A stretch of 64,000 nt of DNA from Klebsormidium nitens. Lineage: Eukaryota; Plantae; Klebsormidiophyceae. The position numbers were made by a program, and so were the translations under genes. Location of the stretch: NCBI GenBank assembly GCA_000708835.1, contig DF237301.1:32790-96789 (forward strand), in the 5' to 3' direction. A model generated the notes under the pieces. The model was not told the DNA's origin. It did not search any database and worked only from the letters and a program-made list of their open reading frames with translations. This document shows, in pieces, positions 7,209 to 63,065 of the stretch; the stretch's first letter is position 1, and every line of letters begins with the position of its first letter.

Positions 7209-9044
7209 CGCGTGCTGGTTTCCAAGGCCCTGCAGTTGCACGTAGAGCTGCAGCGGAGTGCTTTTCAACCTTCTCCGCGGTGGGTATCTCCAGTTGTGAA
7301 CAAGGATTACAAAAGTCTCTTGCACGAGGTGTGGATAACGGTATTGGAGCAAATTGCGAGAGAGAAACAGAGCTCGATGGAAGAATGTTGAGCGTACATT
7401 GTCATAGGTCTGGGATTTGCAAAGACAGGAGCTCGAGCTGGCTGGCTGCGAAGCTAGCCAGGCTTGTGAGAAGCAAACCCTAATTTCAGTTCGCTCTAAA
7501 TTTTACAGCCGTACAATTTACAAAGTGGTTGATGTAACCCTGATCACGTCAACCCCGATCACGTTACATAAAACCCAATTTGACTATACTTACTGTGGTG
7601 GGTACAGGTGGGTACACTCTGCCTATGCAAGCAAGCCGCAGATTTGACAACGTACGGTCGAGGCCAATCGCAAGGTACCCAGCAGATTGGGGCCAGCGTG
7701 GGCCCCGGTTCAGTTAAATTCAGTTGACCGGTAAACTGCTCTTGTGCTAGTTCTAACCAGCCTCCTAACCTTTCGGAACCTGCCCAGCTGGGTTCGCGAC
7801 CGTTCCTCTCGATCGAGCGATCCCTGCTTCAGCCTTCAGAATCGGGAACAGGATCAGCAAGAAGGGCGCTTTGAAAGTGCATGCATTAGGCCAGGGATGG
7901 GAGAGGAAGCAGCAGGCAGCATCGTTGTGAGCTCGATGAAGGTCCGCGTCAGCAGCATTTCTATGTGGAACATTCTTCTGTTTGAGAGCTGCTCATAAAC
8001 GAGGGTCGGTGTGCCGGCCAACATTTTTTAATAGAGGGATCACCCAAGGGGCTTTGGAGCCGCTGTGGCCCAATTCTTGGTATTGAAGGTGAGCGGCTCA
8101 TGGGTTTAGAATTGGGCTCGAGCTTTTTGCAGAGACCTTGGTTTGCATTGTCTTGGACTTGTGTCCTGTCCTATGCCTTAGGTTCTTCTGCTGACTTCCT
8201 TCAGCTGGGCGTCTGCACTCTGCCTTGCAATTCCGCTCTGCCAATAGCGTTTTTCTTTTGTCCCGATCGCCCAACATTCGGTCTCCTTTGAAGATGCAGG
8301 TTGCACATTGGCCCTTCATCTTGCTTTTCAGTCTTTTTCTGCCGGTTACAGCTTTGGTGGTGATGTCAACATCTTCTGCCCTCTTCTAGTCTCTTGTGCC
8401 CTGGTTTGTGTCCTGATTGAGTGCGATTGATTGAGATTGATTTCGATTGATTGAGTCGATCAATTTTACAACAATGCTCTGGCCCTGGTTTCCCACGGGT
8501 GGCACTAGTCTGCTGCTAGAAAGTAGTATTGGCAGATTAAATAGAATTCTCTTAGCCACTAGTGGGTCCTGCGCTCCAATGGAAATGCAAATCACAACCC
8601 TGATAATGGCAGTCTTGCTGGACATGGAAAAATGCAAGTGCTATCACAAGTAGCTGCCCTGCCGTTGAAAAGTGAGTCTGATTGATCAATTGTATGAGTG
8701 TAAATGTTGGGGCAGCAGGTCTGTGCTTTGAATTGTCCCCACCACTTGTTTCTCTTAGCAGATCTCGTGAAAAGTCGACAGAGCGGTGGACCACTTTCAA
8801 ACCAGATGGACGCTTCAGACCCTTTAACCTGAAGGAAGGGTGGTGTCAAAAATGATCAGAATCTTAGTATCCAAAGGGCTGAATGCTAAAGGAATGGTCG
8901 GATATTCACATTTTCTTTTGCTCCTGCAGGCTGACCTCACCAAGCTCTAATTCTTCCGTTACGAAAGCTGGTCGCTCGTCGCTTCTTTTTCAACCTGGGG
9001 TCCTGCTCCATGTTTGTCAACCCCCTTGCATCCCCCCCCAAAAG

Positions 9045-12000: not shown

Positions 12001-15000
12001 CGCACCAACTGGAGAGCTTGACACTGGACTACTGCTGGACGCTAGCGGCGCTGGAGTTGGAGCTGTACCATCTGCAGAACGTCAGCCTTTTCAACTGTCG
12101 AATGTGAGCGCCGCGAGGTTTTAACTCCTCACCCGGGTTGATGTTCCAGGATAACGCGCTCTGTGATGCGACGAGTGACAGGGATTTCGGGAACGTTAAG
12201 GTGCTGTGGATGTAGAAGCGGAGGGGATCTGCGAATGCAGAACATCAGCACCTTACTTCAATCGAGTTGAACGGAGGTTTTCAAATGCAAGTCGGTCTGA
12301 CGAGTTGACGGCGAGTTAAGGTTACACCTCTGGTAACTTCTTCCAAATGAGCGCTCTTTGATATTGGGCAGCAACCGTTGGCATTGCCTTTCGTATGCTG
12401 CTGGCAACAGCCCTTGACAGACTCTTTAAACGCTAATTGTTCACTTGGATAGCTCGACCCGGCTGGAATATTTTTTGAGTCCGGGCCAAGACTTGTTGGC
12501 TCATAACATGGCAATCGGTTAGGTGATAACCGCCATCTATTGCAATCTTTGGCCGTCCCGCCTGTGGCCCACCCCCACTTCATGCAGTCATTGAAGGTGT
12601 ACTCGCAAGCCTTCAGACGTCTTTGATCCAGCGAAGTTTTCAACTCAACTAACGAGTATCTAAGCACAGAAACAAATTCTCGCCTCAAACCCCAGGCTGA
12701 AGTCATGTCAAACCGACTTTGAAACTTTGAATGGAAAAGTTCTGAAATGTCGAACTATTGCCAGGTTGTCGGACGTGAAGCTTCGCACCCCCCGTCTGTC
12801 CTCGCTCCGCCTCGACAGTTGCGGCGCGCTGCGGAAAGTCGACATCTACTCCGCCGAGCTGCGCGCGCTGGCCCTGCGGGGCCAGCCCTTCCTGCGGGAG
12901 GTGCGCCTACGTGGGCCGGAGCTGACGTCACTCGACCTCACCGAGTGCGACGGGCTGCACGAGCTGACGGGGGAGGCGTTCCTGGACCCGCAGGCGTGCC
13001 CCAAGATGACGTCACTCGTGTTGGACAACTGCGAGGTGAGAGGAGAGGCATGGTTGTGTACTTCGTGGGAATTTGGATATAGCTGGGCGAATGGGAGGGC
13101 TATCAGTGGGGTTTTTGAGGTCCAGGAACCTTTGAGAGGGGAGTCGATCCCGTCACACCAGATGAGCAATTCTTTCACCTTCACGTCCTTTCTTTGCTCC
13201 GTATTTTTGAATCTGATCGATCCAGAGTTCAATTCCATCGCGCCAGCGAGGTCACTCTAATATCAACGGCTCTTCTTCCAGGTACACGTCTTTTATTCTT
13301 TCCGTTTCATTTCGGCCCGTCTCATGTCCAAGAGTACGTGCACCAGCTATCAGACATCCACGTCTGCCACCCAGTCACATGATTCTTCTTCTTGCTTTCT
13401 GCAGAGTCTTTTCCTTTCTGTCATTTGCCTCGCTCTCCTTCGGTCCGTTCTCTCCTCTCCGATTGGTTCTGCCATTTCCTCCATAACTCCACCCTTACCC
13501 GTCTCCCCTGCTGGAGGGGCTTGTCTTATTAGGCCCTCGATTTCTTTTCGAATTTGCGCCTTTTCTTACCTTTGTGTCATCGTCGCTCACCATCCTATGT
13601 TCCTCCTCATGCCCTTGCTCGTCTCCGCTTATTCCACTTCATTCAGTTCTTGTACTGTCGCTTCATTCAAACGGTTCTTTCCTTCTTGTTTTATCCAATT
13701 TTATTCCCATTTTGCTCCATCTCAACCCTCGTCGTTTTTCCTTTTCTTCCTCCCCGCGGGGCCTAAGCCGCCTAAACCTCGCTTTCCCCTCCCTTGCGAG
13801 TTCTGTTTCTACTTTTGAATTCAAAAAACACACACGTTGTTATTTTCCCCAAGAGGACCAATATCCAGTCCGCCTCCCCCCCCCCCAATTTTCTTTCCTG
13901 TTTAGATCAGCTTTGCCCCTTCCCTACTCACATCCTCTACTTCTCGCAGGGCCTGACCCGCCTGACCCTTGCATCCCCCTCCCTCTCCCGCCTCTCCCTC
14001 GCCGGCTGCTCCGGCCTCAGCGCCGTCGACCTCGCCTGCCCCGCGCTGACGTCACTCGCCACCGACGGCTGCAACCGCCTCGCAACTGCGCGCCTGGCGC
14101 CCGTCGCGCTCGCTGACGTCAGCCTGGGCACGTGTCCCCACCTCGCATCACTCTGCATCCAGTCGGCGGAGCTCGCGGGGCTGGACTTACGCGGGTGCGG
14201 CGCGCTCGAGGGCGTGGAGCTGGACTGCCCGGCGATGACGCGCCTCGACACGTCATACTGCAGGTGGGGGCCCGCTTTTCAAAGTCAGTAGTGTGTCTTG
14301 GTATTTGAACGTCTTGATTTGAAGACAGACTTGGTGGATTTGACTTGCGCCAGGTGAGAGCTGCGGATTTGCAGAGTCGGGTTTTTCATGATTTCGCAAC
14401 CTTTCTCGTGAGTCCTTAGGTATCGCTAACTAAGTGTACCGCGAATTTCCCACGATGTGACACGTCAATTGTCTGCGCTCTCAATGGCCCCTTCTTCATA
14501 CGAGGAGTTTGAGGGCTCTTAAGCTTTATTGAAGCCTGCTTCTCAAACCAACAAAGTTTTCGACCATTACTGGTCTCCTGAGTTGCCCTTTAAGGTCCGC
14601 GAGCGATGATGACCATTTTTCGCTGACCTGAAGAGGCCAGAAAACGTTGTCGGTCTTGACGCTAAAGACCTTGGGCGAGTCTCAAACCGTACAAAACCTG
14701 CAGTGCGTTTGCTTGCTTAGCTACTGACTGGACTGCTCGTTTTGGACTGATGCAGTGCTGGCACCCAATTCAGCACCTTACTTTTTGCGTTTTCTTTTCG
14801 AGTACGACAATAGTCTGGATGCAGTCAGTAGGCTAATACTTTCACTTCCGCAACTTTTGCTATCTCAGCACGACGAATTGAGAGTAATGAAGGCAATAGC
14901 GCAGCAATTCTGTGCACTTCAGCCACTGCAGCTTCTTCCAGATTCTGCTGAGCGCCGAAGTCAGCGATCAAATCAGGGCATTGGTGCAGTCAGCGTTTGA

Positions 15001-21000: not shown

Positions 21001-23314
21001 AGATTATCAACCCTTGCGATGGCTTGAGGGAAGGCGAGCGCTTCATTGCCTGCCTAGAACCTGTTTGTAGTCTCGTCAGTGGGCTTGTTCATCTCGGAGG
21101 GTTTGAGTAGGATCTGCTGATTTTATCAGGTCAATGACGTGCTCGGTTCAGGACTCTTGAGCTTGCATATCTCTTGCGTACTTACGAGGGTCGTTTGCGA
21201 AGTAGACGAGTTTCATTGTGTGCTTCGTGGCCTGCTTCGAGCATCTTTGAGAGCTTTTTGGAGGGGCAATGGCGCATTCACATAAGGTGCTGAATTGTCA
21301 GCCCGAAAATCTGGTGCTTGCCCACAACAAGTCAGCCAAAGCTCCTTATACTGGCTCTCCTCGACCTTCTCCGACGAAAGTGAGACATGTTTTGAATGTG
21401 ATTTGACATGTCCTTTGAAATGCAGGCTCTCCTCCTATCGGCCTGCAAGCGCCTCCCCGACGCTGCGTTGACGCCCCTCCACTTCGGCCTTCGCCTACCG
21501 CTTCTTGAGGAGCTCGACGTCTCCTATTGCAACCTGAGCGCCGGAGCAGTGGGCGAGCTTTTGGCTCGGGCGCCCCACATTGCCCGGTTCAGCTTCAACG
21601 GCTGTTCCAAGCTGGACGACTCCATCTGGGACCGGCTGGCCGAGCCGCCGGAGGGATCCCCCAAGCAGAGAGACGAGCGCCCAGGGAATTGCTTCGAGCA
21701 AAGAGACCAGCGCTCTGGGGAATCCCCCGAGCAAGGAGACGAGCGCCCAGGAGGACCCCCCGAGCAGAGAGACGAGCACCCGGGGGTTGCTACCGGGCAG
21801 CAGCAGGGTGGGTTGGAGCACCCGAGGGACGGGAGCAAAAAAATCGCGAGCGAACCCCTGACGTGCCCCCCGGCACCGAGGGTCCTGGGGGATCCCTCGG
21901 AGGAAAGCCCCGGGCGCTCTGAGGGATTATTCGTCGGGGTGATGGGCAGCCCGGGCAAAGTGGCCAAGCGCCTGAGGGAGGTGAACCTGGGCGACGGGAA
22001 CGGAGGTAGGGGCGAGGTTAGGCAGCGCAAGCTGACCACGCAGGAGATGACGTCATTCGAGAACACGTTGGTCAGGCACCCGTTCACACTGGACGAAGGG
22101 GCGGGGAAGCGCCCGGTAGAAAGGATGACGGCGCTCGAGAGCCCCGGGGGGGAGAAAGCGGAGGGAGCAGAAAAACCTAGCGTTGCTGCGACGGACCTTT
22201 CGGCAGTGGCGCAGGATTCCACTGTTTCACACTCGCGCTTCCTTGGACCTTCCGCAGAGATCCCCGAGATCCCCGTTGCAGAAGCTCAGGTTGAAGAACT
22301 TCAAAGCAGAGAGTCCCAAAGCGACGAACTTCAAAGTGATGAGCCCCAGATTGGCGGAGACCCAATGGAGTTCGAGCACCCGCGTCGCATGCTGACGTCA
22401 CTCAGCCTGGTGGGCTGCAACGGGCTGCGCTCGGTGCGGCTAGAGACGTGCCCCGAGCTGACGGATTTGAACGCGTCGCTCTGCGGAAACGTACGGCAGG
22501 CGCGGGTGACGTGTCCGAAGCTCGTGCAGCTGAACCTGAGCCAGTGCGGACGGCTGACGGCTGCGGCGGTCCAGTGTTCGACTCTGCGGACGCTGAATAT
22601 ACAGGTAAGGGAGTGGCTTATTGTAACACTCGGTGACGGTGTGCCGCTGAAAGAGAGGCAGTCGAGCAAAAGGACAGATCGCTGGAAAGAAACTTGGTAC
22701 TTAAGGACCGTACGGAGCGCTGTGATGGTGCCATGTCTCTTCGTGTGCGCACAGGAGCACATGCTGCCTTGCTTGATATTTCTGGTTGGGAATTGAAGAT
22801 CTGGGGGCCAATAAATTGTGCGCATCATTGCATCGTTGTTGCAACATTTATGAATCACAGGATAAATTTGGAAAGAAGGGGATGAGAAGCCTACTCCTTC
22901 GGCGGCTGAGCAGGAATTCTCGTAAAAGTATCCAATCTGGCATTCTTATCTGGGACAACAAGCAATTGTTGCGCCGGTTTTTGTGTCTCCAGCGAAGGCT
23001 AATATCCGATCGATTCAATTTGCGCACTGAAGAAAGTCTGCTAGAGTATCTCAACCTCAATGAGGTCCACTACAAGGCGCCGAAGACATTCCCTCGTCTC
23101 GGGTAAGTACGTAAGATTCTCACTGACTGTCCACACATATCTTTTGCAGGGTTGCCAGCTGGACGACTCCGAGGTTCTGGGCATGGCCCGCGGGTGCCCG
23201 GCGCTCGAGACCTTGGACGTCCGTTCTTGTGTCCGAATGCGTTCGGACGACACGGTCAGGACCGTCCGAGAACTGTGCCCGGGCATCAGGCGGCTTCACT
23301 GCGACGCCCACTGA
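9045..23314 (+). CDS. FBL15: F-box/LRR-repeat protein 15 (SLOMO) homolog, ~1096 aa; exons 9045-9441, 10011-10113, 10606-10768, 11158-11472, 11916-12103, 12765-13035, 13950-14263, 20744-20939, 21426-22604, 23150-23314
   Basis: The F-box DLTQDLLYKVFSHLD...VCRQW...HEDFW and the run of Cys-containing LRRs (e.g. LDLSYTEIESLEPIFSACTQLK) match plant FBL15 as I recall it. Ten GT-AG exons join in phase to the stop at 23312-23314. A probable 5'UTR intron spans 8089-8929. Confidence 0.9.
21663..21794 (+). repeat. Coding minisatellite, 4 x 33 bp (11-aa unit EQRDERPGxxP), in FBL15 exon 9
   Basis: Units start at 21663, 21696, 21729 and 21762 and share (G/A)AGCA(G/A)(A/G)GAGAC(G/C)AGC(G/A)C. Confidence 0.85.
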
Positions 23315-32300: not shown

Positions 32301-35300
32301 AGTCTGTGAGCTGACTGTCACAAATTGCGTAGATGAGAGCACTTAAACGACGTCCGCTGAAAGTTTCTGCAAGAAACAAGTTAAATCTCTTGATACAAGC
32401 GCGCTAGAGTGCTAGAGTGTGGGACATTAGCACTGCTTTACTAGTCGTCCCAATGGCCGATCCACTCATCGTTGATGGTGCTAATCCAGGAACATTTTAC
32501 TATACTGCGTCTGGCAGAAAGTGCATCATAATTGGCAGAGTCTTTAGTGATTGAAAGCTGTTCCGACCTTTCTCAGCTCCCGCGCCTCCAAGTAACCACA
32601 TGAACCGTTCTGGTGCGCACTTCTTGCCTTACTAGAACAGTGCGTGTATTAGTGCGGTCGCTAATACTGTGGTTGCTTGCCAACAGGCGCTGGTTCAATG
32701 GCGGCGGACCACATGCCCGGCAGGACTTCCTCCGAGTTCCAGCGCTCGACGGTCACGGGCGAGCCGATCTTGGACCGCGAGAGCGAGATTGCCATGGGTG
32801 GGTTTTCGAAAGGCATCTGACATGTGCGCGTGTTCGTTCTATCTGCCAACGATTTACTCCTCGGGGCATCCAGCCATGCGTGATACGACGCAAATGAATG
32901 ATCCTTCCTTTGCGTCGAGACCAACATCGTCTGTTGATCCGTTTCGTCATTTCCACACAATCTCCTCTTCCGGAAAAACATTTGGTTTTGGCCCGTTCGG
33001 GATTCCTGCACCTTGAAATAGAACTTCTCCACAAAATGCAAGAATTCTCAATCAACGGCGACCATTATTCGTCTCCGCAGGCCAAGGCCGCGCCGCCGAG
33101 GCGCCCCCCGCGGCCGCGGCAGCGGCCACCCAGCACGCCGCGACCGAGCAGAGCGACCTGGACTCCTCGTATGTGAAGGAGAGCCCGGAGACAGCAACCG
33201 GGCAGAGTGGCATGGGCAGTTTGCGTATGAACGAGAGTGCCTCAGGGCTGGCGACGCAGGCCGAGATGGGAGAGCCACCGATGTCGCCCCGCTCGCAGCA
33301 GTACCTCCAGCACGGGGAGCCGGTCAAGTGTGAGTGACAAGCTTTGGTCCGTTTTTCGTTTTGGTGCGTTTTCAACTTGGTGGCAGGAGGTTCTCTGTGC
33401 AGATTGGGATCATTGCGGTAATTTTGACTGTACGGAAGGACCGTGAATTACATACGTCTCTGAACATGTAACTTGGTGCGAGATTTTTCTGCGCAGATTG
33501 GGGTGAGTGCAGTACTTTATCTAGACGTAAGGACCTTGAATCGCTTATGTCTTTGCATAGATAACAGGTGGCACGCGTTCGACCGTACGTGATGCCATAC
33601 GAGCGGCAGATGGTTACTTCCGCCACGAATGCTTTGATCTGGCGTAGGAAAGATTGGAGTCTTCGTACGGCAAAAACGTTTGTTAATACATGGGTGCCTC
33701 CGCCTCCTTTGATCCTTCTTGTCGATCCAGAGCATTGTACGTTCTCAGTTACTTTTCGGAGCTATCGAAACGATTACCTTGATCACGGAGGCGGCGATTT
33801 GATTTCGCAAAACGGTACAGCGAGTCTTTCGAAATCGTGTTCTGATGAGTTGTGCTTCTGTCCCACGTGCAGCCCCCAGCCTGCTGACGAGCGCTAAGTA
33901 CGCCTTTGGGCGCGCTCAGAACAAGCTGACCAACACTCACCATCACCGTAAGTTGCAACCTCTAGCTTCTTCAGCCTCGATTGTAATCTCACCTCTCAAG
34001 AAGAGCGGGCCGGGCGGCCGGTTCGGTTTGCTAAAAAGAATTCTAATTTTTGAATGAGCGAAGAGCACCTTTCCAGGGCTTTGTTTCAGGTCTGCGCGAC
34101 CTGCGCAGGGGGAGTACGGACTCCGATCTCTCTTACCGCCTGTCGAAGCGTAGGAAAGATCCTTTTCTGAGCGGCACTTTCTTTCACCTCACCTGAGTCC
34201 CTCCCGCCTTTCCAATCGCGAAGTCACTTTGTTACCGGCAATGTTAGGCCTCCACTGCCAAACGAACACTTTGGGCTGTTCGTACGACTAAAAGAAGGTT
34301 GGTTCGAAGAGAGCGTTTTCACCCCCTGTGCACAATAAAAACACACGTTCCCCCGCGCGCGCGCAGTGACCGCGGGCGGCGGCACCATCTCTTCGGTGAC
34401 GGGCGTCGCGTTCGGCAAGCTGGACGTGGTCGCCAAGCGCATGCTGCACGGCGGGGAGCACCTGTGGCGCGAGGCCTTCCACCCGCCGCCCGAGGAGCAC
34501 CTCAGGAAGTGTGAGTTCGATCAAACCCAAATTCCTTGACTAAAATACTCGAGACCTCCCAAGCCTTCAATTCGCCGCCCGAGTAGTACTTCAGGAAGTG
34601 TGAGTTCAACCAAATCCAAAGTCCTTAACCCTGAGCTAGAGACCCTACAAATGAAATTCTCGAGACCCTCCAGGCCTTCAACCCGCCGCCCGAGGAGCAA
34701 CTAAGGAAGTGTGAGTTGGACAGAAACTAGGTTTCTTTGACCCTGAGTTCGAAACCCTAAACATGAGTCATCTGAGACCGCCAGGCTTGCAACCCGCCGC
34801 CCGAGGAGCACCTCAGGAAGTGTGAGTTTGATCAAATCTAAGTCCCTCAATCGTGAAATCGAAACCCTGAACCTGAAAATCTTGAGACTGCCAGGCTCTC
34901 CGCCCGCCACCCAAGGAGCACCTGAGGAAGTGGAAGTAGGCTGAAAATCTGAAATTCAAATTGTACGGCAAAGTCGCTCAAGCTCGAACTCAAAAACCAC
35001 TTATTTCATTGGTCCCGATCGGTGGTCCCGCAAGGTAGCTCTTGAGTTGGATAGCACACGACTTTGCAGTCCTTCCTCTTTCCCGTCCTCTTTGTTCTCG
35101 TTAACCGAATGCCCGCCACAGAAGTACGGCTAGGGTCACGGTCTTTCCTCCCTTGACCCTCGGCAGTTATTTCCTTTCCTTGTCACCGCTGGGGATCGTA
35201 CGCGCGCAGGATTGCACGCCTCTCTCTGCACTCCTCACCAGTTGTGAGATCGCGCATTTTCTTGTCCAAACTTTTCCTCGTTATCAATCTAATCTTTCCA

Positions 35301-52979: not shown

Positions 52980-53924
52980 GAATTCCTCTCGCGCTTATTG
53001 CTTGTCGTCAGAAATGGCGCAAAAGGAATGCTGCTTCCGGGGTGGTCACAAATATTGGCAGACGCGAGCTTGAGGGAGACGAACCTCTTCCTCCTCTGCT
53101 TTTCGGCTGTCAAACCTCAAAGTCTCCCCTAGCTTAAACCAGCAGCCAGCCGGCCCGCCGTCTCCTCGCCATGACTTGCCGCGTTTCAGCAGCAGTTGCT
53201 GACGTGTTATTCACATCCAAGCAGTTCATCTCTCTCCATCATAGGACTGACGAACGGTCCGACAGAGTGTGTATTTCCGAGTCGCTTGTTGGCGGAGGCT
53301 GTCTCGTCACTTTTAAGATTGAATCAGAGGTCACCAGTGAACCATTCCACCCTTGGATACTCGTCAAGATAGGCATGTTGCGTAGATGCTGCATGTATCG
53401 GTGACCTCCTAAGACTATCGTCCTCAAGACGTTCGAGCGTCAAGGTTGGCCCGCCCGGGCCCAAGGCAAGGGTCGAGCGCGCGGCGCGCGCTTCGCAGCC
53501 GAGGCGCGCGACCTTGCATTCCCACCCAACCCAGCCTGGGTCAGTGTACCGGGCACCCGGGCGTCAGCCCGTCAAGCATAGCCTATTCGCCATAAGGGCC
53601 GGGACCAGTCGTAAGGGCCCCGTTACCACTCTGGACCAGACCGTTCCCGGGTCACGACCGAACCGTACTCGGAGCCTGCATCATGGTCTCGAAAGCTGCC
53701 ACTTCTAGTCTCCAGCATTGTCCAGCTGCCGACGTACATGCTGCAACTTGCCCGGGCACGAAGCTAAGTAGGATAGCGACTGACGCCAAGCGGAAAAGTC
53801 TTCTCAGGCATGGCCGAGTAAGTGACTGGCAGCCTTCCCTACTTGGCAGTTAAGTCTCCGGAGTTGCTTGAGCTTTTGGGGGCAAACAACATGCTTTGCT
53901 GTGCTCTGCTTCAGTTCAGGATAC

Positions 53925-56900
53925 ATGAACCGCAATCAAAGGGCAGAGGCATCGACCCGCTCTGCAGACCAGCCGGCCCAACCCCAGGAGCTGGAGCAGC
54001 TGCTTGTGTCAGGCGGTAGCGGCGAGCCGGATGGCGAGCAGGTCAGTGTCGAGTGCCCTCAGCAGCTTCTGAGTGAAGTTGAGGGCCTACACTGTCCGGA
54101 TTCCAAGCGCCCCTCCCGCACATGTTGCCAGAGCTGGCCTCTTCCTCGTTTTATAGAATTTTATGCCTGCTAGTGGGTACGCTCAATTAGGTTTAAGCAG
54201 CTTTGGCAGGGCATGGTCGTCTGGTACGGTGTACCCACCAGCGGGCAATTCTTCATAAGATTCAAACACCGGACAGTGGGTATGCTCGATCAACTGGAAA
54301 CAAACATTGCAGGGCATGATTGTGTACCCAGTGTCGGGAAATTCTTTCTTAGACACAAATGCCTGGCGGCGGGTACGCTCAATCAACTGTAATCGAACGT
54401 CGCAGGGCACGATTGTCTACCCAATGTTAAGGGATTTTCCCTTAGACACAAATGCCTGGCAGTGGGTACGCTCAATCAATAAGGAGATGAACAGGGCATG
54501 GTCGTACCTGCTGCAGCGTGTCCCCACTGCCTGGCAGACTCCAACTGCTGGCAAGTTGGTACGCTCTGTCAGTTGTAAGCGGATTGGGCGTGTCGCAGTG
54601 TGTACCAACAGCTGGGGATCCCTTTTTGTATCCGAATGCCCGGTACTGGGTACGCGTTGTCATCTGTAAGCAGCTGTTTTGAGTGGCGTGGCCGTCAGAA
54701 TGTACCCACTGTCGGATGATTTTTTGTAGACTTCACTGCCTGGCGCTCGGTACGCCTCTGTATCGAATGATCTTACAGCTCGAGTTCCTACCAATGGGTG
54801 GTGTCGCTCGCTTTCTTCTGTCGATTCCAAGCAGATTGTTTGCCACCCAATCAATCGCTCCTCTATGTCTGCAGAGTGGTCTTCAATCAACGCTCTCAGA
54901 GTCTGCCGGCCCCTATCAACCACCGCCTTTGGACCAGCCGATGGGCGAGCAAAACCCGTCCGCACATGGTGCATCAGCTGACTCGCCGGTGGAGGGGCCC
55001 CTACCGGACAGTCTCGCTTTGCCGGTTCCACTCCATCCATCAGACATGCCCATTGCGGTGAGCTCTTTGAACGGCACTCACACATTCCTAGTTTTCATTC
55101 CTGTTGTGTGTAATATCACTGGCCGCATGTACCTTCCTGCAAAGTTTCCAATCGTTCGTCAGTGAATACGCTTTGTCATTTGTAAGCTAAACTGGGGGTT
55201 ACGGCCGGTTCAAGGGTGTACCCACTGCCGGAGAACTGATTCTCAGACTCTAATTGCCCGCCAGTGGGTACGCTCTATCTTGCCTGGTATGGCCCGCGCC
55301 CCCTTCACACAGTGTACCCAGCCTTGACGAATTGTTTCTTACACTTGTTCCGCCCGTTAGCGGGTAAGCTCTATCTCGGGTGGTATGGCCGTCGACAGGG
55401 TCTTTTTGCAAGTGTACATAGCCCCGACGAATTAATCCTTAGAGTCTAATGCCCGCCAGTGGGTACGCTCTATCTAGCATGGTATGGCCGTCGCCCCATT
55501 CACGCAACGTACCCAGTCCTAGCGAAATGATTCTAGATTTCAATGCCCGCCAGTGGGTACGCTCTATCTTGCCTCATATGGCCGTCTCCCCTCCCCCCCG
55601 TTGTCACCCACCTCCTGCCATATTGCGCACGTGCAGGGCGGCACCGGACTCGGACTCGGACCCTCCCCGGCGCTTCCCACAGCTGACGCTCGCCCAATCT
55701 CGAAGCCCCCAATTTCGACGCCCGGCGCTCTGCCTTTAAATTCGGAGGTACGTCCAGCCACTTTTCACTTCTTTAGGGATCAGCGTGCACCAGTCACTCA
55801 AGGAATTTGGAACCCACCGCCGCCCATTCCTTTCGAAGCATCCTAATGCCCGCAAGTGGGTACGCTCTATGCTCGGGTGGTATGGCCGTCGTCCCTTTCA
55901 CACGGCGTACCTAGTCCTGGCGAATTGATACATGAACTCCGATTCCTGCCATCGGGTACGCTCTATCTTGCCTGGTATGGCCGTCACCCCTCCAGGCTCC
56001 ATTTTCCACTCACTGCCTCCCATTTGCGGCTCAGGCGCACGGTGGCACTGGACGGGCACCCTCCCCCGCGGTTTCCACAATTGACGCTCGTACAACTTCG
56101 GAGCAGCTCCAGCCCGTCGCTCTGCCTTCGGATCCGGAGGTACGTCTTGCCACTCATCATTTGGGATCCGTGTGCGCCAGTCAGATTAAAGGCCCGCTCT
56201 GCACCCATGGACGAACTGCGCGCGAGCGAGTGCTTGCGGTATGTGTGGCAGCAACTTCTGGAAAAACATCCTCTCAATTCTCGGTTCCGTGTGCGCGCGC
56301 TGACAGCGTCGAGCAATTGCGACATGTTGCCTCCCTCATGCCCACCCATTTTGGCTCGTGCACAGATCGATTCCGCGAGCAGAGTCACAGAAGCGGCCCG
56401 TCCGTCGCCCTCCACGGCTGATGCACCTCATTCGACGGAGGCAATGTTATCAGCTGCCCCACTGGAGCCGCTTCCACAGAGCTGGTGAGCTGTTCTGGCT
56501 CGAAATGGCTTGAAGCGTACCCACTGCCGCCTACTTTTCTTTAAGAATCTTAACGCCCGCCGATGGGTACGCCCTCTCTTGCCTGGTCTGGCCGTCCGCT
56601 TTCCCAACGGCGTACCCACTTCCGCCCACTTCTTTCCAAATAGCATGATGCCCGCCAGTGGGTAAACACTATTCTTAGGCAGATTGGCCATCTGCCTTTT
56701 CTGCACGGCGTACCCACTGCTATCTCATTGATTCTTGGAATCCGGTCGCCCGCCACTGGTAAGCTCCATCTCGTTTTTCGCTCTAAACTTGGGCCATCTC
56801 GTGCATGCATGCATAGGGCGGCTTTGCACCGATACCGCCCCAAGCGACCTCGGAGCCGCGGCAGCCCGCCACTCTTCTCAACCGGCAGTCGGATGTACAG

Positions 56901-58194
56901 GTACGCCTCCGCCATGCGTTGCCTTGAAGCTCCGCCTACATTGTATCCACCGCGGGCACTTGTTTTTCAGAAAACTAATGCCCGCCAACCGGTACGCTCT
57001 ATCCTGGGCGGCATGGCCGTCCCCCGATTTGCCCGATGTGTTGCAGTCCTCATGTCGATCATGATTTCTCCTCAATCAGCCCTTGGCACCTCTCCTCCCG
57101 GCTGCTCTCTGACAGCGGCGCTTCTGAGTCACTGGTGGCCATCTCTGCAAACTTGCCCTTTTGCATTGAGCGTCTCCGTAAGTACTCATACAGTCCGTCT
57201 TGCGTGCAGCCGTCGTCATCTGTTGAGACGAGCACCGCCGGTCCAAGGAGCGCTGCAGGTTCGAAAAGGTCGTCGAGCTGGAGGAGCCCGCGCGTCAACG
57301 CCGGGTCTCGTGGGAAAATTTCCCTGATGGTGAGCGCACAGCATCTGTAGGGGCACTTTTCGTGCAGCTTCAACGGAAAGCGTATGCTTCTTGCATGGGT
57401 GCACAGCATGCTTGACTAGGAACCTTTCAATCAAAGCGGAACCTTCCTTCATTCTTTTCAAGGCGCTCTTGTTCTCGCAGCTCGACGACAAGCACATCCG
57501 CCTCGACGACCGCGATGTCTCCTCCAATCTCATGGGGGTCGGCGGACAGACCTTTAGCCCAGCAGACCTAGCATCCGATTCTGGCCAGGTGATCCTTGTC
57601 TCCTGTGATCCATTTTGAAGTGCTACGAATGCTGAATGAAGTAGAAAATTGCGTGTCGTCAAGTCGGACCCCTCTGAAAGACCGTGCTGATTGCTCGAAA
57701 CATTGGACGATTTTCCAGTTTGCGATTCCTTTGGGACCTTCGACCGACTCATAGTAGGTGGGCTCTATCTTGGGCGACATAGCTCTCATCTTTCTGCACG
57801 TTGTACCCACTTGTGGCGTATTCTTTCTCGAATTCCCAATTGCCGCTAGTGGGTACGCACTATGTTTCGGTGGTACGGTCGGCTGCCCTGTATCCGCCCT
57901 GGGGCGGCATTGCCGCGCAATCTCTGCACGGCAAACCCAGTCGAGGACAATTGTTCCCAGAATAATAATGCCTCGAAGTGGGAACGCGCTATCCTCGGCG
58001 GCATGGCCGCCATCCCTTTCCTCCTGCACCCACCATCACTGCTCGTGCATGTTGTGCAGGCAGCACCTGCCGAGGCTCCGCCTGCAGCTGGCGCTCCCCC
58101 CTTTCGCCGCCTCCACGCATACATAAGGAACTACCTGTCACCCTTTTCATCACCATGTAAGATAAATGAAGATTATCGACAATGTAGGTTATGA
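53925..58194 (+). CDS. Orphan Pro/Ser-rich protein, ~414 aa; exons 53925-54041, 54875-55057, 55637-55747, 56035-56139, 56366-56484, 56817-56900, 57047-57329, 57481-57588, 58060-58194
   Basis: Nine segments bounded by canonical AG/GT sites join in phase with no internal stop. No recognisable domain. The start codon and expression are unverified. Confidence 0.55.
54163..58010 (+). repeat. ~95-bp dyad-containing repeat family (~20 copies) located in introns of the orphan gene
   Basis: Box A AATGCCCGCCAGTGGGTACGCTC(T/A)ATC has cores at 54175, 54278, 54371, 54464, 54557, 54648, 54748, 55266, 55362, 55461, 55555, 55858, 55954, 56564, 56660, 56757, 56990, 57851 and 57980. Inverted box B GTGTACCCACTG lies about half a unit downstream of box A. 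Confidence 0.9.
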
Positions 58195-58656
58195 CCTACA
58201 TACGTTGAAGCAGATATAGGTACATGCCTCTATTGGACAAAGACGGCAGGCCATGCCAGCCATATGATTACCATGAAACATGTGCATGCACGATCCGTGC
58301 TAATGGGCATCCAATTGAGAATAAGATTCGTCCCCTTTCGCCACAAATAAACTCCTGCTTGGTGGCTGCAAGTTCCAAAAGCAATTGGCTCTAGAAGAGC
58401 GTTGCATCATCACAATATCCCGGCTTGACACGACTCACTACGGACAGCAGCCAAACACGGGCTGCCAATAATAATGTCAGTTGCAATTCAGAGAAGCGTT
58501 ATTCTTGCACTGCTGACGACCTTGCACCACTGACGATGTCAGGGCCAACGGTGCATGTTCTGACCGTTCGAAGCAGGATTTCTGACACCATGTAACCAGG
58601 CAGGGGGCAAACCACTTGATGACATCCAGTTCAGAGCAGCCGGTTATCCGATGGAC

Positions 58657-61600
58657 CTAGTCCTGCGAAAACGAGACTCCACGGTCGCAGTTACAAGCCA
58701 CCCACTGCTCGTCGAGTAGGGACGATGCACTTCTAGCTTTACTGCTCAGCATGTGGAGGAACTGGCGGCCTTGCTGTGACAAAACTAGGCCTGCATCGAC
58801 AGCCAACTCCTTCAACACTTTTGCTAATTGAAACAAGTCGGAGGCTTCAACGTATTGACCATTAACCAGAGTGGCGTCCTCCCATGAGTCGAAGCGATCC
58901 AGCGGGGGAGGGTCCCCTACGTGAGCGACGGACTCCAGGTCGATAAGCATGTGCTTCAGGCGCGGGGAAGAGTCCTTGTAGGAACAGATATTGGGCTTGC
59001 GGAGATCCCGGTGGCAAATGGACGCGTTGTGGAGGACGACAAGCGCATGCAGGAGGTCATGCGCGATCTGGCGGATCTCCTGCAGAGTGTTTGAGATGAG
59101 TCAGCTTCAAGACGATTGTACTTAAAACACTCATCCAGTTTTGACTAGGACGGAAAGCCCGGAATTAGAGAGTTGTGCTTCTGACCTCATAAACTTGATC
59201 ATGTCCGATGTGAGGTTTTGCGGAAGTAAAAACGGCAGACTGACCTCCGGCCTTCTTGGAGATTGTTCAAAAGCACTCCCATGACAAACATCGACACACT
59301 AGTAGCTTCTTTACGTTTGCTTAAGAATAGGCTCCTCAACGTACCAATCAGGAAGCAAGCTCCTAAGAGCAGCTCCTGAGGAGCTAGAGGCAAGCAGTCT
59401 ACAGCACCGCGAACGAAACTTGCAGACACCTCACCTCCTCATTGTTTGCTTGCACCGGCATCCCAAGAGGCCGGGTGACGACGCGGTAAGTACCGGTAGC
59501 AGCATCCAAGAAAGGCCCCTTCACCGCGTGCACGATGTGCGTAGTCGTCTTTGCGGCATCGTAAGCTGCGGTCACGATCGCAAAGCTGGTAGCCGCCCTT
59601 TGGAGGTAGTCCGGCGCGTTGTAGATGACCTTGACGATGCTGCAAGCAGAAGAAAGGAGAAAGCAAGACGGACTAGGTTAAGATGAGACTGCAGGACACG
59701 GATCGAACCAAGATCAAGGACTCTAAAGCAAGCAATGTTTGCTGTGGCCACACGAGGAGACACTCGCTTGGGACCAGGATACCAGTGGAAAGCCACTCTT
59801 ATCAAAGCATCTGCCACCTTCCCCCTTCCCGTCCTTCAAAAGTGCTCCAACTTTTGGCTTATCATTTCGCCATGTCTAAACAGAGAGACACGCCCTGAAA
59901 ATCTTTGACGCCAAAGGCTCTCAGTTTGATGCTGTGATCAACCCTCCAGGAGCGCGTTGGCAGCTGGCACGCAAGGCATGCTAGTCGATTTTGCTGACAG
60001 ACTGTTGCTGATCTGTTGTCATTTTCCGAAAGAAGCAACTTAAACTCTGGCTGGGATAAAGAGCTACGGACCTGTTGTGGGTCGGAGTCACGGTAGCTTG
60101 ACCGTGTCGAGTCTTTTTCTTGAACATTTGAAGTCCACCGTGTTCCTTTGGCAGGTACTCTTTCAGCTTCAGGAGCAGCTTGTAGATGTTGACGACGACC
60201 AAGAGCAGCTTGGCGCGGCCGTGCTCGGTGCTGAAATCGATCTCGTCCAGAATCGGAACGAGCTGCAGCTGGAGTGGATAAGATTAGGTACAAGACAAGC
60301 AGATGGTGCTTCTCTAAGCAACAATGTCGTTTCCTGCTTTACAAATCTTCTCCTTCAAAGTTGTGCGGAAAGACTTGGAAAGTCTTTGACCCACCTGTTC
60401 CTGACTCCTGCCCCGTCTGCTCTTCTTTTGGCCTCCAAAACTTGCATCAATCCTTCCGCACTCAAGAGAGGCATTGGAACTGGTGGTCACCTTTGGAAGA
60501 TTCCCTAGTTTTGAAAAACCTGAGGCTTTACCTTTGCCGATTGAGAAAGAGGCAAAGTTAGTTAACTTCGATTAAGGAGAACTAGATGAGGACATGAAGT
60601 ACTCAGGTAGAATTAACAACCAGATTTAACCATCAAATACTACAATACTGCAGGCAGTGACCCCTGCCACACTCTCGGACTTTGTCCCAGCTTTGAGCCT
60701 CTTCAGTTGCATGCTTGGCGGCCACGAAAGAATCTGAGCCCTCGTCACCACTGGCAATCACCCCCTTTGCCAAACCTAAGCGGGTCTGGAGGCCCCGCGG
60801 CAGCACTTAAACAAGGGTGATGGAGTGCTACCAATGAACAGTCAGGTTCAGCTTTGATGGTTGGAGCACGATGATCACCTCCGCAGTCTGAGTCTTGATG
60901 GCAAACCACTGGACTCGCTTTCCGGCGGCGGCGTATGCTGGGATGTAGTCAAGCCGCCCGTAGTGGATGGACGAGAATGGCTCGTTAAATTTCTTCTTGA
61001 CGTCCCTGAGCGCGCTGGCGAGCGGTTCGTCCTCTGGCTTCTCTTCCCCCGCGAGCAGAAGCGTATATGCTGCTGTCAGCGTCCCGTCAGGCCTTGTGCT
61101 CTCAATGTTGGGGACGCTCCACGTGTTCTTGGTCGTCGCGTTCTTATCGTAGACAAGGCCCAGCTGCAGGGGCGGCCTCATTCTGCGATCAATCTGGTAC
61201 AGGACATCGAAGAGCAGCTTGGTGACAGCGTACGCCGTGAGCTCTTCGGTGCCAGAAGTGTGGATAATCTCCTCAATCCGGGTCGAAAACGTGGCGACGA
61301 TATTCGCCTGCACAAACAAGGGGAAAGAAAAGCATTGAGTAGAAGTCTGCATGTACAGATCGACATGAGCGTGCAAATGTACACGATTATCAGTCAAAGG
61401 CGTCGGACATGTTCAACCCAGTGGACTCATCCAAGCTCTGTTGCAGACTGCAAGCTCTGCTCCACAAATCGATGGTAAAACCTGAAATCTTGAGCAATAA
61501 ATCTGGATACTTTTATCCTTCCTGATCAGAAAAAGAAAAGGCGTTAGATGCCGTGACTTTTCCTCAATGGGAGTGCACTACACAGGTACACAACCTAGCA

Positions 61601-62696
61601 GAGGCTCTTCCTGATGCATTTTTTCGATGCAATTGAGGGGGACATCGAGGGCCTTTGGATACACAATCTGAAAGACCCCTCGAGAAAACCACAAAGAGGT
61701 GCTTTTCCAAAAGCCTTGCAAAAAGCCTTCCAAATCTAATTGGCACCAATTTGGCACATGCAGTAGCAGAAGCCCCGCTCCTGCACATCACAAGGACATC
61801 TTGGTAGCAAGGTGCACCGCCTTGACTTGGCAGTGCTTACCGTCTCCTGCTCTGTGCACACGCGGACATAGTCGGTCCCCCCGACATCACGATTCAGGGA
61901 CTGGAACACCTGCAATGTCACCGGCACCTTCTCGAGCGTGCTGAGAAGGAACTGGCTCAAGTCCTCGATGGTCGGGGAAGTCGCTGGCAGGGTCCCGATC
62001 AGGCGTTCCAGAATCAGAATTGACATATCGGGGGCTACTGCAAGACGACGCACACTCTCTGTGAGAACTGCACCCTGCCCTGTGCTACCACTCCCCTAAA
62101 TGCATCAGCCGCAAAGAATCGGCCTTAAGGCTGAATTTTCGGGAGAATAAAGATGTTCACAAGAAGCATCTGCACCATGAAGATCACGAGCCCCATCCTG
62201 CTCGGACAATCTGCATTAGAAAGCGCCTTTTGCAATCCTCACCTTCCCCAGAATGAATGCTTCTCTGGTGGCAAATTTAACAAGAAGGTTGAGGATTGAA
62301 TCAGGAAGAAGAGGAGGGGAGAGCCCTTCCCTGCCAAACAGCAGCTTACAGAAAAGCCTTACCCTTCTGCTTCTTCGCCTCCGCCTCCTCCCTCAGCCGC
62401 TGCCTCTCGTCCTCGTCCCTCCGCCTCTTTGCCTCCGCATCTTCCTTCTGCCGCTGCCTCTCATCCTCCTTCCTTTGCCTCTCATCTGAGACCTTTGTTT
62501 TATACGCCCTAATGAGGGTGAGAAGCGGCACCGGAACATTCTGACAAGTAAGAAAGTCAACATCCGCCTCAGCAAGCGCAAGAGGTTCTGTCAGCAGATA
62601 CTTGTCCAGGATCCCTATATACTCATCTGAAAGATTCTTCGCCGAGGGCAGGTGACCTTCTAGTCCCTTTCTCACTGCATCCAGATCTGAAGACAT
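58657..62696 (-). CDS. Crinkler (CRN)-type protein: helical header, charged linker, PD-(D/E)xK REase-like domain and kinase, ~594 aa; exons 62696-62363, 62037-61841, 61307-60879, 60268-60072, 59639-59435, 59079-58657
   Basis: REase-like motif RPDGTL...LLAGEEK. Kinase catalytic loop HRDLRKPNI with LIDLE in place of DFG. Six phase-compatible GT-AG exons with no internal stop. Confidence 0.82.
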
Positions 62697-62899
62697 GGCT
62701 GAGCTGTCTCCGGGGGGGGCTTACTACAACACCTCAAAAGCGCTTAGGCAGTACAGTTGGGCAGCCGACTCGCACACCGCTGAAGACTGATCAACAAGTC
62801 TCCTTCATGTACACATCTCGTCTCCTTCCGACGTCCCTTATATCCGAATTTCGCGTCTCAAGTGCTCAGCATGGCGCCCTACTAGTATCTGCGTACCAA

Positions 62900-63065
62900 A
62901 AATGGCGCGTACCCACTGGCGGGCATTTGGAGTCTAACAAAAAGTAAACATCACTGGGTACACTATTGTGAGAGTGGGAGACCGACCATACCACTTGGAA
63001 AGGTAGGAGAGACTGAGAACACGCCAGGCCACTGAGCGCACGCTGCTGATCACTTGGCAGGTTTC
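62900..63065 (-). repeat. Inverted copy of the ~95-bp dyad repeat upstream of the CRN gene
   Basis: GCGTACCCACTGGCGGGCATT (62907-62927), CACTGGGTACAC (62952-62963) and GACCGACCATACCA (62980-62993) are the reverse complements of box A, box B and the TGGTATGGCCGTC box. A TATA-like TATAA lies at 62842-62838. Confidence 0.85.

Follow-up and report, generated by a model that had tools for sequence, protein, structure and literature searches.

The G1 gene and its introns

The window, a stretch of 64,000 nt from Klebsormidium nitens contig DF237301.1 within which all coordinates are given unless another contig is named, contains a spliced plus-strand transcript, termed G1, with nine exons and eight GT..AG introns (Table 1). 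The introns were defined by RNA contigs drawn from four runs in four studies; one of these contigs joins exons 2 to 7 without mismatch, and a colinear contig spans positions 53783-54011, over the start of exon 1. G1 is expressed and spliced and belongs to a small and fast-evolving gene family built from duplicated exon-intron cassettes, and the repeat units that occupy its introns are spliced out together with them.

Table 1. Exons and introns of G1 and the nearby solo copy of the repeat
Feature	Position	Strand	Description
Exon 1 (G1)	53925..54041	+	ATG at 53925, open frame; joint 54041/54875 in 4 runs
Intron 1	54042..54874	+	7 subfamily-A units, 54154-54783; seventh partial
Exon 2	54875..55057	+	183 nt; missing in paralogs G2 and G3
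Intron 2	55058..55636	+	5 units, 55144-55608; first A-like, other four subfamily B
Exon 3	55637..55747	+	X-type, 111 nt; homologous to exons 4, 6 and G2 exons Xa, Xb
Intron 3	55748..56034	+	leading right arm 55808 and 2 units, 55837-56026
Exon 4	56035..56139	+	X-type, 105 nt; second copy of the ~398-bp tandem duplication that also made exon 3
Intron 4	56140..56365	+	no intact unit; decayed relic, right-arm-like ~56200, left-arm-like 56217
Exon 5	56366..56484	+	119 nt; deletion of 1 nt within a C run compared with G2
Intron 5	56485..56816	+	leading right arm 56515 and 3 units, 56543-56774; last partial
Exon 6	56817..56900	+	X-type, 84 nt
Intron 6	56901..57209	+	right arm 56941 and 1 unit, 56968-57039
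Exon 7	57210..57329	+	120 nt
Intron 7	57330..57480	+	unit-free
Exon 8	57481..57588	+	108 nt
Intron 8	57589..58059	+	3 units, 57739-58033
Exon 9	58060..58194	+	coding part; phase-0 stop at 58192-58194
Solo copy	62894..63006	-	~1.2 subfamily-B units; 198 nt upstream of the next gene's ATG (62696, minus strand)

The reading frame was taken from exons joined by script; of the eight exons whose two ends are both defined, seven are a multiple of three in length. The initial annotation spoke of coding exons, and the frame is indeed open across the others, but exon 5 breaks it because of the deletion in its C run; the RNA contigs show no indel against the window sequence in this exon. The host protein is low-complexity, and a Pfam search with each of the nine exons taken separately returned no match. 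A word search in which exon 5 was scored alone within a 210-aa open reading frame likewise gave no match, and one with an open reading frame that reads through two units gave no candidate.

Some AG dinucleotides lie within or near the units. A minor alternative acceptor (54405/54406) is located inside an intron 1 unit in RNA run X5, while an AG at 57046 in intron 6 is unused in the RNA contigs. The segment that follows the latter (57047-57177) was considered as a “dead exon” and rejected, being similar to none of the G1 exons. RNA editing was also rejected as the source of an A>G difference at 53981, where both the variant and a 168-nt loose end are consistent with transcripts of paralog G3; the 30-nt consensus of this loose end matches the end of G3 exon 0 exactly. 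Mutually exclusive choice among the duplicated exons, of the Dscam docking/selector type, was not retained either, as single contigs from several runs carry exons 2, 3, 4, 5, 6 and 7 serially, although contigs may miss rare isoforms.

A family of dyad repeats within G1 and beyond

Scanning with an HMM built from the units located 21 dyad units of 93-99 bp, all on the plus strand between 54154 and 58033, and none in the exons of G1, in agreement with the initial description of ~95-bp dyad repeats in six of eight introns. Most units have E values of 1e-10 to 1e-22, the weakest (1e-3) being a partial copy. Introns 1 to 8 hold 7, 5, 2, 0 (one decayed relic), 3, 1, 0 and 3 units, respectively, so that the counts first given (7, 4, 2, 0, 3, 1, 0 and 2-3) stand apart from intron 2, and intron 8 is settled at three. 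Unit DNA amounts to ~1.8 kb out of the 3.19 kb of G1 intron DNA (57%). The relic in intron 4 is clearer in its G2 counterpart. With up to two mismatches allowed, the left-arm 12-mer has 26 matches in the window, compared with a mean of 4.05 and a maximum of 10 in shuffles, and 25 of them fall within 54171-57987 or at 62.9 kb.

The units are arranged head-to-tail with a tandem period of 93 according to TRF and start-to-start distances of 91-103 nt. Each runs from a right arm through an AT-rich spacer and a left arm to a box, consensus TGGTATGGCCGTC. The arms are inverted repeats of 10-19 nt flanking the spacer, with an average of 11 and a maximum of 16 matches in 19 positions. The potential arm stems are short (~10-17 bp). 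Rather than alternating every ~48 bp, as had been proposed, the arms are unevenly spaced, with ~55-65 nt from left to right and 28-40 nt from right to the next left. The phase of the arrays is mostly constant, right arm first and ending after the box; the last units of introns, previously described as truncated, are full-length and only decayed and pyrimidine-rich. Two subfamilies can be distinguished, A comprising intron 1 and the first unit of intron 2, and B the remaining units. In the subfamily-B units of G1 conservation is ~80-90% over the first 44 nt and ~55% over the remainder, and the left and right arms differ in their degree of conservation.

Units are also found outside G1, hence the term “intron-confined” is apt for this gene but fails at 62.9 kb and 3' of a replicase stop codon. 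The copy at 62.9 kb lies ~5 kb from the G1 array within the window, and similarity to contig L010, from a relative, stops at 62901, which is the edge of this copy. Its ends are fuzzy and no target-site duplication was seen, this being the one near-solo copy available. A 62% relative of the neighbouring gene (on L011) has neither units nor DNA similarity.

Further arrays are associated with a multi-copy gene encoding a primase/UL9-like helicase (here “replicase”), which carries a Herpes_ori_bp helicase domain (E 4e-14) and adjoins Prim-Pol and DUF5906 genes. One array lies in an intron of GAQ86180.1 (L013 13110-13270, between tblastn-mapped exons ending at 13027 and starting at 13389) and a second starts ~170 nt 3' of its stop codon; both are also present in L012, L014, L015 and L016. 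The edge of the intron array fades into decayed unit sequence, and arrays in the replicase flank differ by an indel of one unit (77-78 nt). In other copies a G-family gene is located directly upstream of the primase/UL9-like helicase gene, whereas tblastn found no replicase homolog in the neighbourhood of G1 within the 64-kb window. The link between units and the replicase element is based on ~170 kb of sequence. In every case checked the arrays share the strand of the adjacent gene, and coding sequence contains none of them. A metagenome scan with the left-arm 19-mer yielded nine matches, which we regard as due to chance because the similarity ends with the 19-mer in each case.

Cassette duplication among the paralogs

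The family includes two further paralogs, G2 on contigs L010 and L012 of a metagenome relative and G3 on K. nitens scaffold DF237223.1 (L013), both of which carry sense-oriented unit arrays. Cassette layouts were compared among G1, G2 and G3, with no outgroup. With U for an array, u for a single unit, i4 for intron 4 and X for any member of the exon 3/4/6 family, G1 reads E1-U-E2-U-X-U-[X i4 E5]-U-[X u E7 E8]-U-E9, G2 reads E1-U-[X..E7 E8]-U-[X i4 E5]-U-E9 and G3 reads E1-U-[X i4 E5]-U-E9. The three genes therefore differ in the set and order of their cassettes, and arrays bound every cassette. Exon 2 lies between A-type units in G1 and is absent from G2.

Similarity among exons points to their duplication within the gene. 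Among the five X exons of G1 and G2 similarity is 57-78%, and within G1 exons 3 and 4 (z 17), 4 and 6 (z 7.7) and 3 and 9 (z 5.3) are similar. The 398-bp duplication of exon 3/exon 4 extends from the first base of a unit to ~55 nt beyond the donor site. An ancient origin of exon 2 from exon 1 together with the beginning of intron 1 was considered but is not claimed, as the similarity is weak (z 5.0 with lenient gap costs). Unit counts in intron 1 are 7 for G1, 7.5 for G2 and 4 for G3, and between G1 and G2 the first three A units of this intron align position for position. The suggestion in the initial annotation that units mediate exon-cassette shuffling thus receives indirect, comparative support from the array-bounded cassettes, the duplication that starts exactly at a unit and the absence of exon 2 from G2.

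Constraint, origin and possible roles of the units

Between G1 and G2, identity is 75.0% in exons, 70.4% in other intron sequence, 72.4% in the 5' half of units and 68.8% in their 3' half. Among copies of the replicase element it is 96.0% in exons, 94.6% in non-unit intron, 93.3% in units and 96.4% in non-unit flank. This lack of extra conservation counts against a protein-binding array, which had been raised with regard to the GTAC core recognised by SBP/CRR1. The uneven conservation of subfamily B hints at uneven constraint, but it is largely gone between positional homologs and may be an artefact of a poorly aligned, indel-rich half. A structured RNA, also proposed initially, finds no backing: the whole window has no match in Rfam, RNAalifold over the units gives a consensus of -2.6 kcal/mol without the arm stem, and compensatory changes in the arms are absent, cognate arms (11.3 and 10.8 of 19 positions matching) being no more complementary than non-cognate ones (11.2-11.4). 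Of the three observations that together were to refute the initial reading (scattered copies, a lack of covariation and a lack of small RNAs), the first two were made. The scattered copies found all share the strand of the adjacent gene, and none falls in coding sequence.

The explanation that we favour, and consider fairly probable, is that the units constitute a minisatellite-like dyad repeat family of Klebsormidium that drifts by unequal recombination or slippage, travels with duplicated cassettes and has no sequence-specific function. The common ancestor of the paralogs would already have borne arrays, which may have spread to several G1 introns mainly through tandem duplication of whole cassettes, each an exon together with an array-bearing intron. 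Unit number would then have drifted through unequal crossing-over or replication slippage, both of which could be favoured by the hairpin-prone arms. Because neighbouring introns share array homology, unequal recombination between them could duplicate, delete or reorder the intervening exons.

The sense-only and mostly one-phase arrangement of the arrays is not required of a neutral repeat and counts against this explanation, although inheritance from one ancestral array could account for such placement. The favoured explanation also gives no route by which units came to be present in the intron and flank of the replicase gene.

Several other readings deserve consideration. It is possible, but in our view unlikely, that the units derive from a small mobile palindromic element, MITE-like or introner-like, which inserted independently into introns and was then amplified locally. 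Inverted arms of 10-19 bp surrounding an AT-rich spacer, copies at unrelated places (G1, 62.9 kb and the replicase intron and flank) and the solo copy exactly where similarity to the close relative's contig stops would all be consistent with mobility. On the other hand, neither target-site duplications nor sharp ends were found at the one near-solo copy available, and the edges of arrays grade into decayed units; the splice sites are located in sequence free of units, intron 7 is devoid of units and intron 4 retains only a relic, and the metagenome 19-mer scan produced chance matches only. Moreover the arrays are positionally common to the paralogs, which argues that they are old and not independent insertions.

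A functional connection to the replicase-bearing element can also be envisaged. We think it doubtful that the units are working parts of this element, either as origin-like sites bound by the helicase or as modules that reshuffle cassettes of an accessory gene family, with sense-only, phase-locked placement under selection. In a more specific form, to which we attach a low probability, the units would be putative cis-acting, origin-like or iteron-like palindromes recognised by the element's own UL9-like origin-binding helicase. Arrays within and directly 3' of the Herpes_ori_bp gene, close to Prim-Pol and DUF5906 genes, and their recurrence at these two positions across five copies of the replicase region accord with such binding sites, and the inverted arms around an AT-rich spacer may be likened to herpesvirus oriS. 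However, units are the least conserved class among the element copies (93.3% versus 94.6-96.4%), and G1 has 21 units yet no replicase within 64 kb.

It is improbable that the arms act by folding in the pre-mRNA, their hairpins shortening long introns or tuning splicing or intron retention. Hairpins between a right arm and the next left arm reach z scores of -3.3 to -5.7 in three of four cases, unit-bearing introns fold slightly more stably than shuffles (z -1.1 to -3.1, compared with ~0 for unit-free introns), and all arrays are in the sense orientation; but any inverted repeat would yield such modest z scores, compensatory changes and a consensus structure are absent, the arms are unequally conserved, and unit number varies freely across paralogs.

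Very improbable, and rejected on the basis of alignments and PWM scores, is the proposal that the arrays are “mirages”, tandem copies of the gene's own exon-intron junctions (PMC3087553). In its favour, the unit contains GTACGC, which resembles a donor, and TTCTTAG, which resembles an acceptor; several donors are followed after 30-60 nt by the first right arm, roughly in unit register, and the donor of intron 6 corresponds to unit position 13, which is the GTAC of the unit. However, the unit PWM scores -11 to -23 for the eight donors as against +11 to +38 for units (donor scores p 0.02-0.22 against random GT sites), no alignment crosses from unit into exon at either end, and unrelated genes carry the G1-type unit, so the units are not copies of splice junctions and hence not mirages.

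Overall, the units look like unconstrained repeat DNA and not like a new RNA or regulatory system. As the repeat bears no sign of function its value is mainly descriptive: the locus is an RNA-supported example of a short, hairpin-prone repeat that fills introns and accompanies remodelling at the level of cassettes, with three paralogs having three exon sets and each cassette bounded by arrays. It bears on intron lengthening and on the gain, loss and reordering of exons in modular genes, and links the repeat with the multi-copy Klebsormidium element that encodes a primase/UL9-like helicase. Annotation of the K. nitens genome is also affected, as the arrays cause assembly gaps and split gene models.

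Comparison with known systems

Among described repeats, the arrays agree with intronic minisatellites in being head-to-tail with a period of 93-99 bp, differing in copy number between copies, removed with the intron and showing no detectable constraint. They depart from these in the strong internal dyad of the unit, and in that the family recurs in many introns of one gene as well as in other genes, in the sense orientation wherever this was checked and largely in a single phase. As with mirages, these are minisatellite-like intron arrays ignored by regular splicing, in which some units have unused AG/GT signals and one contains a cryptic acceptor with low-level use, but the Klebsormidium units include no neighbouring exon edge and are common to unrelated genes. 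A short unit with inverted arms and an AT-rich core, present as arrays and one near-solo copy, recalls MITE-derived arrays and satellites, although neither target-site duplications nor defined termini were observed, nor was there an identifiable autonomous partner with matching terminal repeats.

Like the introner elements of Micromonas, Aureococcus and fungi, the present family has been seen in non-coding DNA only, chiefly in introns, and in the sense orientation relative to the gene. Introners span nearly the whole intron and supply or create splice sites. In G1, by contrast, every splice site is outside the HMM-defined units, and one to seven units sit inside older introns. Exons are also duplicated or deleted through unequal recombination between intronic repeats, for example in Alu-mediated events in primate genes. 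While the Klebsormidium case involves a local minisatellite in place of a dispersed SINE, and the evidence is comparative only, repeats in neighbouring introns here similarly flank exons that differ between copies, and one duplication starts exactly at a unit.

Intronic arrays and the G1 transcript

The dyad-repeat arrays are real, are intronic and lie on the sense strand of their host gene G1. RNA contigs from four RNA-type runs in four studies, mapped over 53400-58600, define eight splice joints in G1, all GT..AG on the plus strand, and join exons 2 to 7 within single contigs with zero mismatches; they hold no information on strand, rare isoforms or small RNAs. Allowing up to 2 mismatches, the left-arm 12-mer CAGTGGGTACGC matches the window 26 times, compared with a mean of 4.05 and a maximum of 10 in shuffles, and 25 of these matches fall within 54171-57987 or at 62.9 kb. 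A profile made from the units, whose period is 93-99 bp (Tandem Repeats Finder and a repeat finder), places 21 of them between 54154 and 58033, all on the plus strand and none overlapping an RNA-supported G1 exon, and retrieves a single solo copy elsewhere in the 64 kb. Of the 3.19 kb of G1 intron DNA, units account for ~1.8 kb, and the counts per intron tabulated below are near those of the initial annotation.

In each unit the left arm, with consensus TGCCCGCCAGTGGGTACGC, is joined by a short linker to a box that reads TGGTATGGCCGTC in subfamily B and GGCATGGTCGTC in subfamily A; a C-rich linker then leads to the right arm (GCGTACCCACTGCCGG), and ~28 nt of AT-rich spacer complete the unit. 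Subfamily A comprises the units of intron 1 and the first of intron 2, and subfamily B all the remainder; pairwise likeness among units is 58-87%, and they are therefore old. In introns 3, 5 and 6 at least, where the leading right arm lies 30-60 nt downstream of the donor, and in both arrays of the replicase region described below, the array begins with a right arm and finishes after a box, so the natural register of the unit is right arm, spacer, left arm, box. The final units, which the initial annotation took to be truncated, are instead complete, their right arm having decayed to the pyrimidine-rich tract before the acceptor.

The introns are also covered by low-depth contigs, as expected of unspliced RNA. 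A minor alternative acceptor at 54405/54406 lies within a subfamily-A unit; in run X5 its joint, 54041 to 54406, has depth 9, versus 53 for the main joint. All four runs carry a 168-nt loose end ahead of 53927 and an A>G difference at 53981. The 30-nt consensus shown for this loose end is an exact match to the end of exon 0 of G3, the paralog that K. nitens scaffold DF237223.1 carries; both features are therefore cross-mapping G3 transcripts and not RNA editing or trans-splicing. Separately, high-depth RNA contigs over 53500-53700 replace 53524-53582 by 27 other letters and show several loose ends; this segment resembles a portion of another, more strongly expressed transcript and is ~80% identical to a segment upstream of G3 and of the second paralog, G2.

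Positions of the introns, repeats and related features (L010 and L012, metagenome relative carrying G2; L013, DF237223.1; L014-L016, further metagenome contigs)
Feature	Sequence	Coordinates	Strand	Content
Intron 1	window	54042-54874	+	7 units
Intron 2	window	55058-55636	+	5 units
Intron 3	window	55748-56034	+	2 units
Intron 4	window	56140-56365	+	0 units
Intron 5	window	56485-56816	+	3 units
Intron 6	window	56901-57209	+	1 unit
Intron 7	window	57330-57480	+	0 units
Intron 8	window	57589-58059	+	3 units
Exon 5	window	56366-56484	+	
Solo unit	window	63006-62894	-	1 copy (about 1.2 units)
G3 cross-mapping site	window; L013	53927-54041; 3938-4239		loose end, A>G 53981
Replicase gene set	L013; L012; L014-L016	8653-21532; 1-8300; 		multi-copy
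Assembly gaps (N runs)	window; L013	25163-25379, 49839-50408; 15347-15365		
Other tandem array	window	21656-21785		33 bp x 3.9
Other tandem array	window	34542-34932		111 bp x 3.5

Folding of the units

Single units form the expected hairpins when folded. In the left-to-right register z is near zero in subfamily B and -3 to -4 in subfamily A, and between a right arm and the left arm that follows it, three of the four cases reach -3.3 to -5.7; whole unit-bearing introns outdo their shuffles by a small margin only (z -1.1 to -3.1), and unit-free introns give z of about 0. Cognate arms are complementary at 11.3 and 10.8 of 19 positions and non-cognate arms at 11.2-11.4, which gives no sign of selection for pairing in the arms; their complementarity is an inherited property of the unit consensus. 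The structured RNA proposed in the initial annotation is not supported; Rfam gives no match, and no consensus arm helix emerges among the units with RNAalifold.

Modular exons and cassette differences among paralogs

A tandem duplication of ~398 bp, spanning the first base of a unit to ~55 nt past the donor, produced exons 3 and 4, whose duplicate origin is clear (z 17); z is 7.7 for exons 4 and 6 and 5.3 for exons 3 and 9, pairs of older kinship. Exons 1-8 measure 117, 183, 111, 105, 119, 84, 120 and 108 nt, only exon 5 not being divisible by three. The ATG frame (53925) is open across exons 1-5, and the frame open in exons 6-9 is that which a 120-nt exon 5 would yield. Relative to the 120-nt exon of G2, exon 5 lacks 1 nt of a C run near 56453, hence its 119 nt, and the resulting shift makes the ATG frame stop at the exon 7/8 border. 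The window sequence is matched here by the RNA contigs of all four runs, which makes an assembly error improbable. In G2, exon 8 holds a TAG within an otherwise conserved frame and exon 1 is 95 nt long, and both genes look frame-damaged. The G1 product is rich in Pro/Ser/Ala; its exons, each searched singly, gave no Pfam matches or word-search relatives.

With U for an array, u for a single unit, i4 for intron 4 and X for an exon of the exon 3/4/6 family, G1 reads E1-U-E2-U-X-U-[X i4 E5]-U-[X u E7 E8]-U-E9, G2 reads e0-E1-U-[X..E7 E8]-U-[X i4 E5]-U-E9 and G3 reads e0-E1-U-[X i4 E5]-U-E9. The order of the bracketed blocks is reversed between G1 and G2. Exon 2, unique to G1 among the three, is flanked on both sides by A-type units; in the corresponding G2 intron A and B units are continuous, with no exon between. 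G1 is without exon 0 and ~3 kb of upstream sequence common to G2 and G3. Arrays bound every cassette that differs among the paralogs, a pattern that fits, and does not prove, unequal recombination between arrays; the suggestion in the initial annotation of exon-cassette recombination has comparative support.

The replicase element and the nature of the arrays

Relatives were reached by a word search with a neighbour-gene exon (minus strand, 60.8-61.3 kb), and all comparisons cover ~170 kb of sequence. The search led to a JGI metagenome contig encoding a protein of 99% identity; across 59658-62503 this contig and the window share 98.8% identity. The match breaks off at 62901, where the solo unit has its edge; past this point L010 has, at about 7940-7950, a sequence resembling a tRNA, followed by an element copy (G2 and replicase), a structural difference between the two. 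G2 carries sense arrays of 7.5, 2.5 and 2 units. The gene region that comes next encodes a UL9-like helicase domain (Herpes_ori_bp) and bears two further arrays on the same strand; its DUF8368 part clusters at no less than 90% identity with K. nitens GAQ86180.1. On DF237223.1, G3 carries 4 units in one array and 3.5 in another, 1.7 units sit in a replicase-gene intron placed by tblastn mapping of the exons, and a 3.5-unit array starts ~170 nt past the replicase stop codon; both replicase arrays are also present on L014, L015 and L016. The assembly gap on this scaffold falls inside a unit array, so such repeats disturb the reference assembly.

The unit family is thus common to other members of an element-associated gene set. 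This multi-copy, intron-bearing set combines a primase-like part with a UL9-like helicase (PF02399) and DUF8368, and a DUF5906 gene comes next; its copies are 92-95% identical, on L015 and L016 it adjoins a retrotransposon with a DNA methylase, and overall it resembles a large Klebsormidium element of mobile or viral origin.

Between G1 and G2, positional identity is 75.0% in exons and 70.4% in other intron sequence, and 72.4% and 68.8% in the 5' and 3' halves of matched units. Copies of the replicase element, among which a whole-unit indel occurs, are 96.0% identical in exons, 94.6% in non-unit intron, 93.3% in units and 96.4% in non-unit flank. Conservation of the units therefore does not exceed background. 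The arrays are quite unlikely to act in cis for the neighbouring UL9-like replicase or to have been selected for shuffling cassettes. Their behaviour is that of unconstrained repeat DNA, which would have multiplied by tandem duplication at two scales, that of the 95-bp unit and that of a cassette of at least ~400 bp.

Nor are the units mirages, which are tandem copies of exon-intron borders (PMC3087553): this defining feature is absent, as unit alignments stop short of the exons at all 16 G1 junctions and, against a position matrix built on the left-arm region, scores run from -11 to -23 in the eight real donors and from +11 to +38 in the units. The window holds two other tandem arrays of no relation to the dyad unit, and the 111-bp array, whose unit contains a donor-like GTGTGAGT, may be such a junction-echo array.
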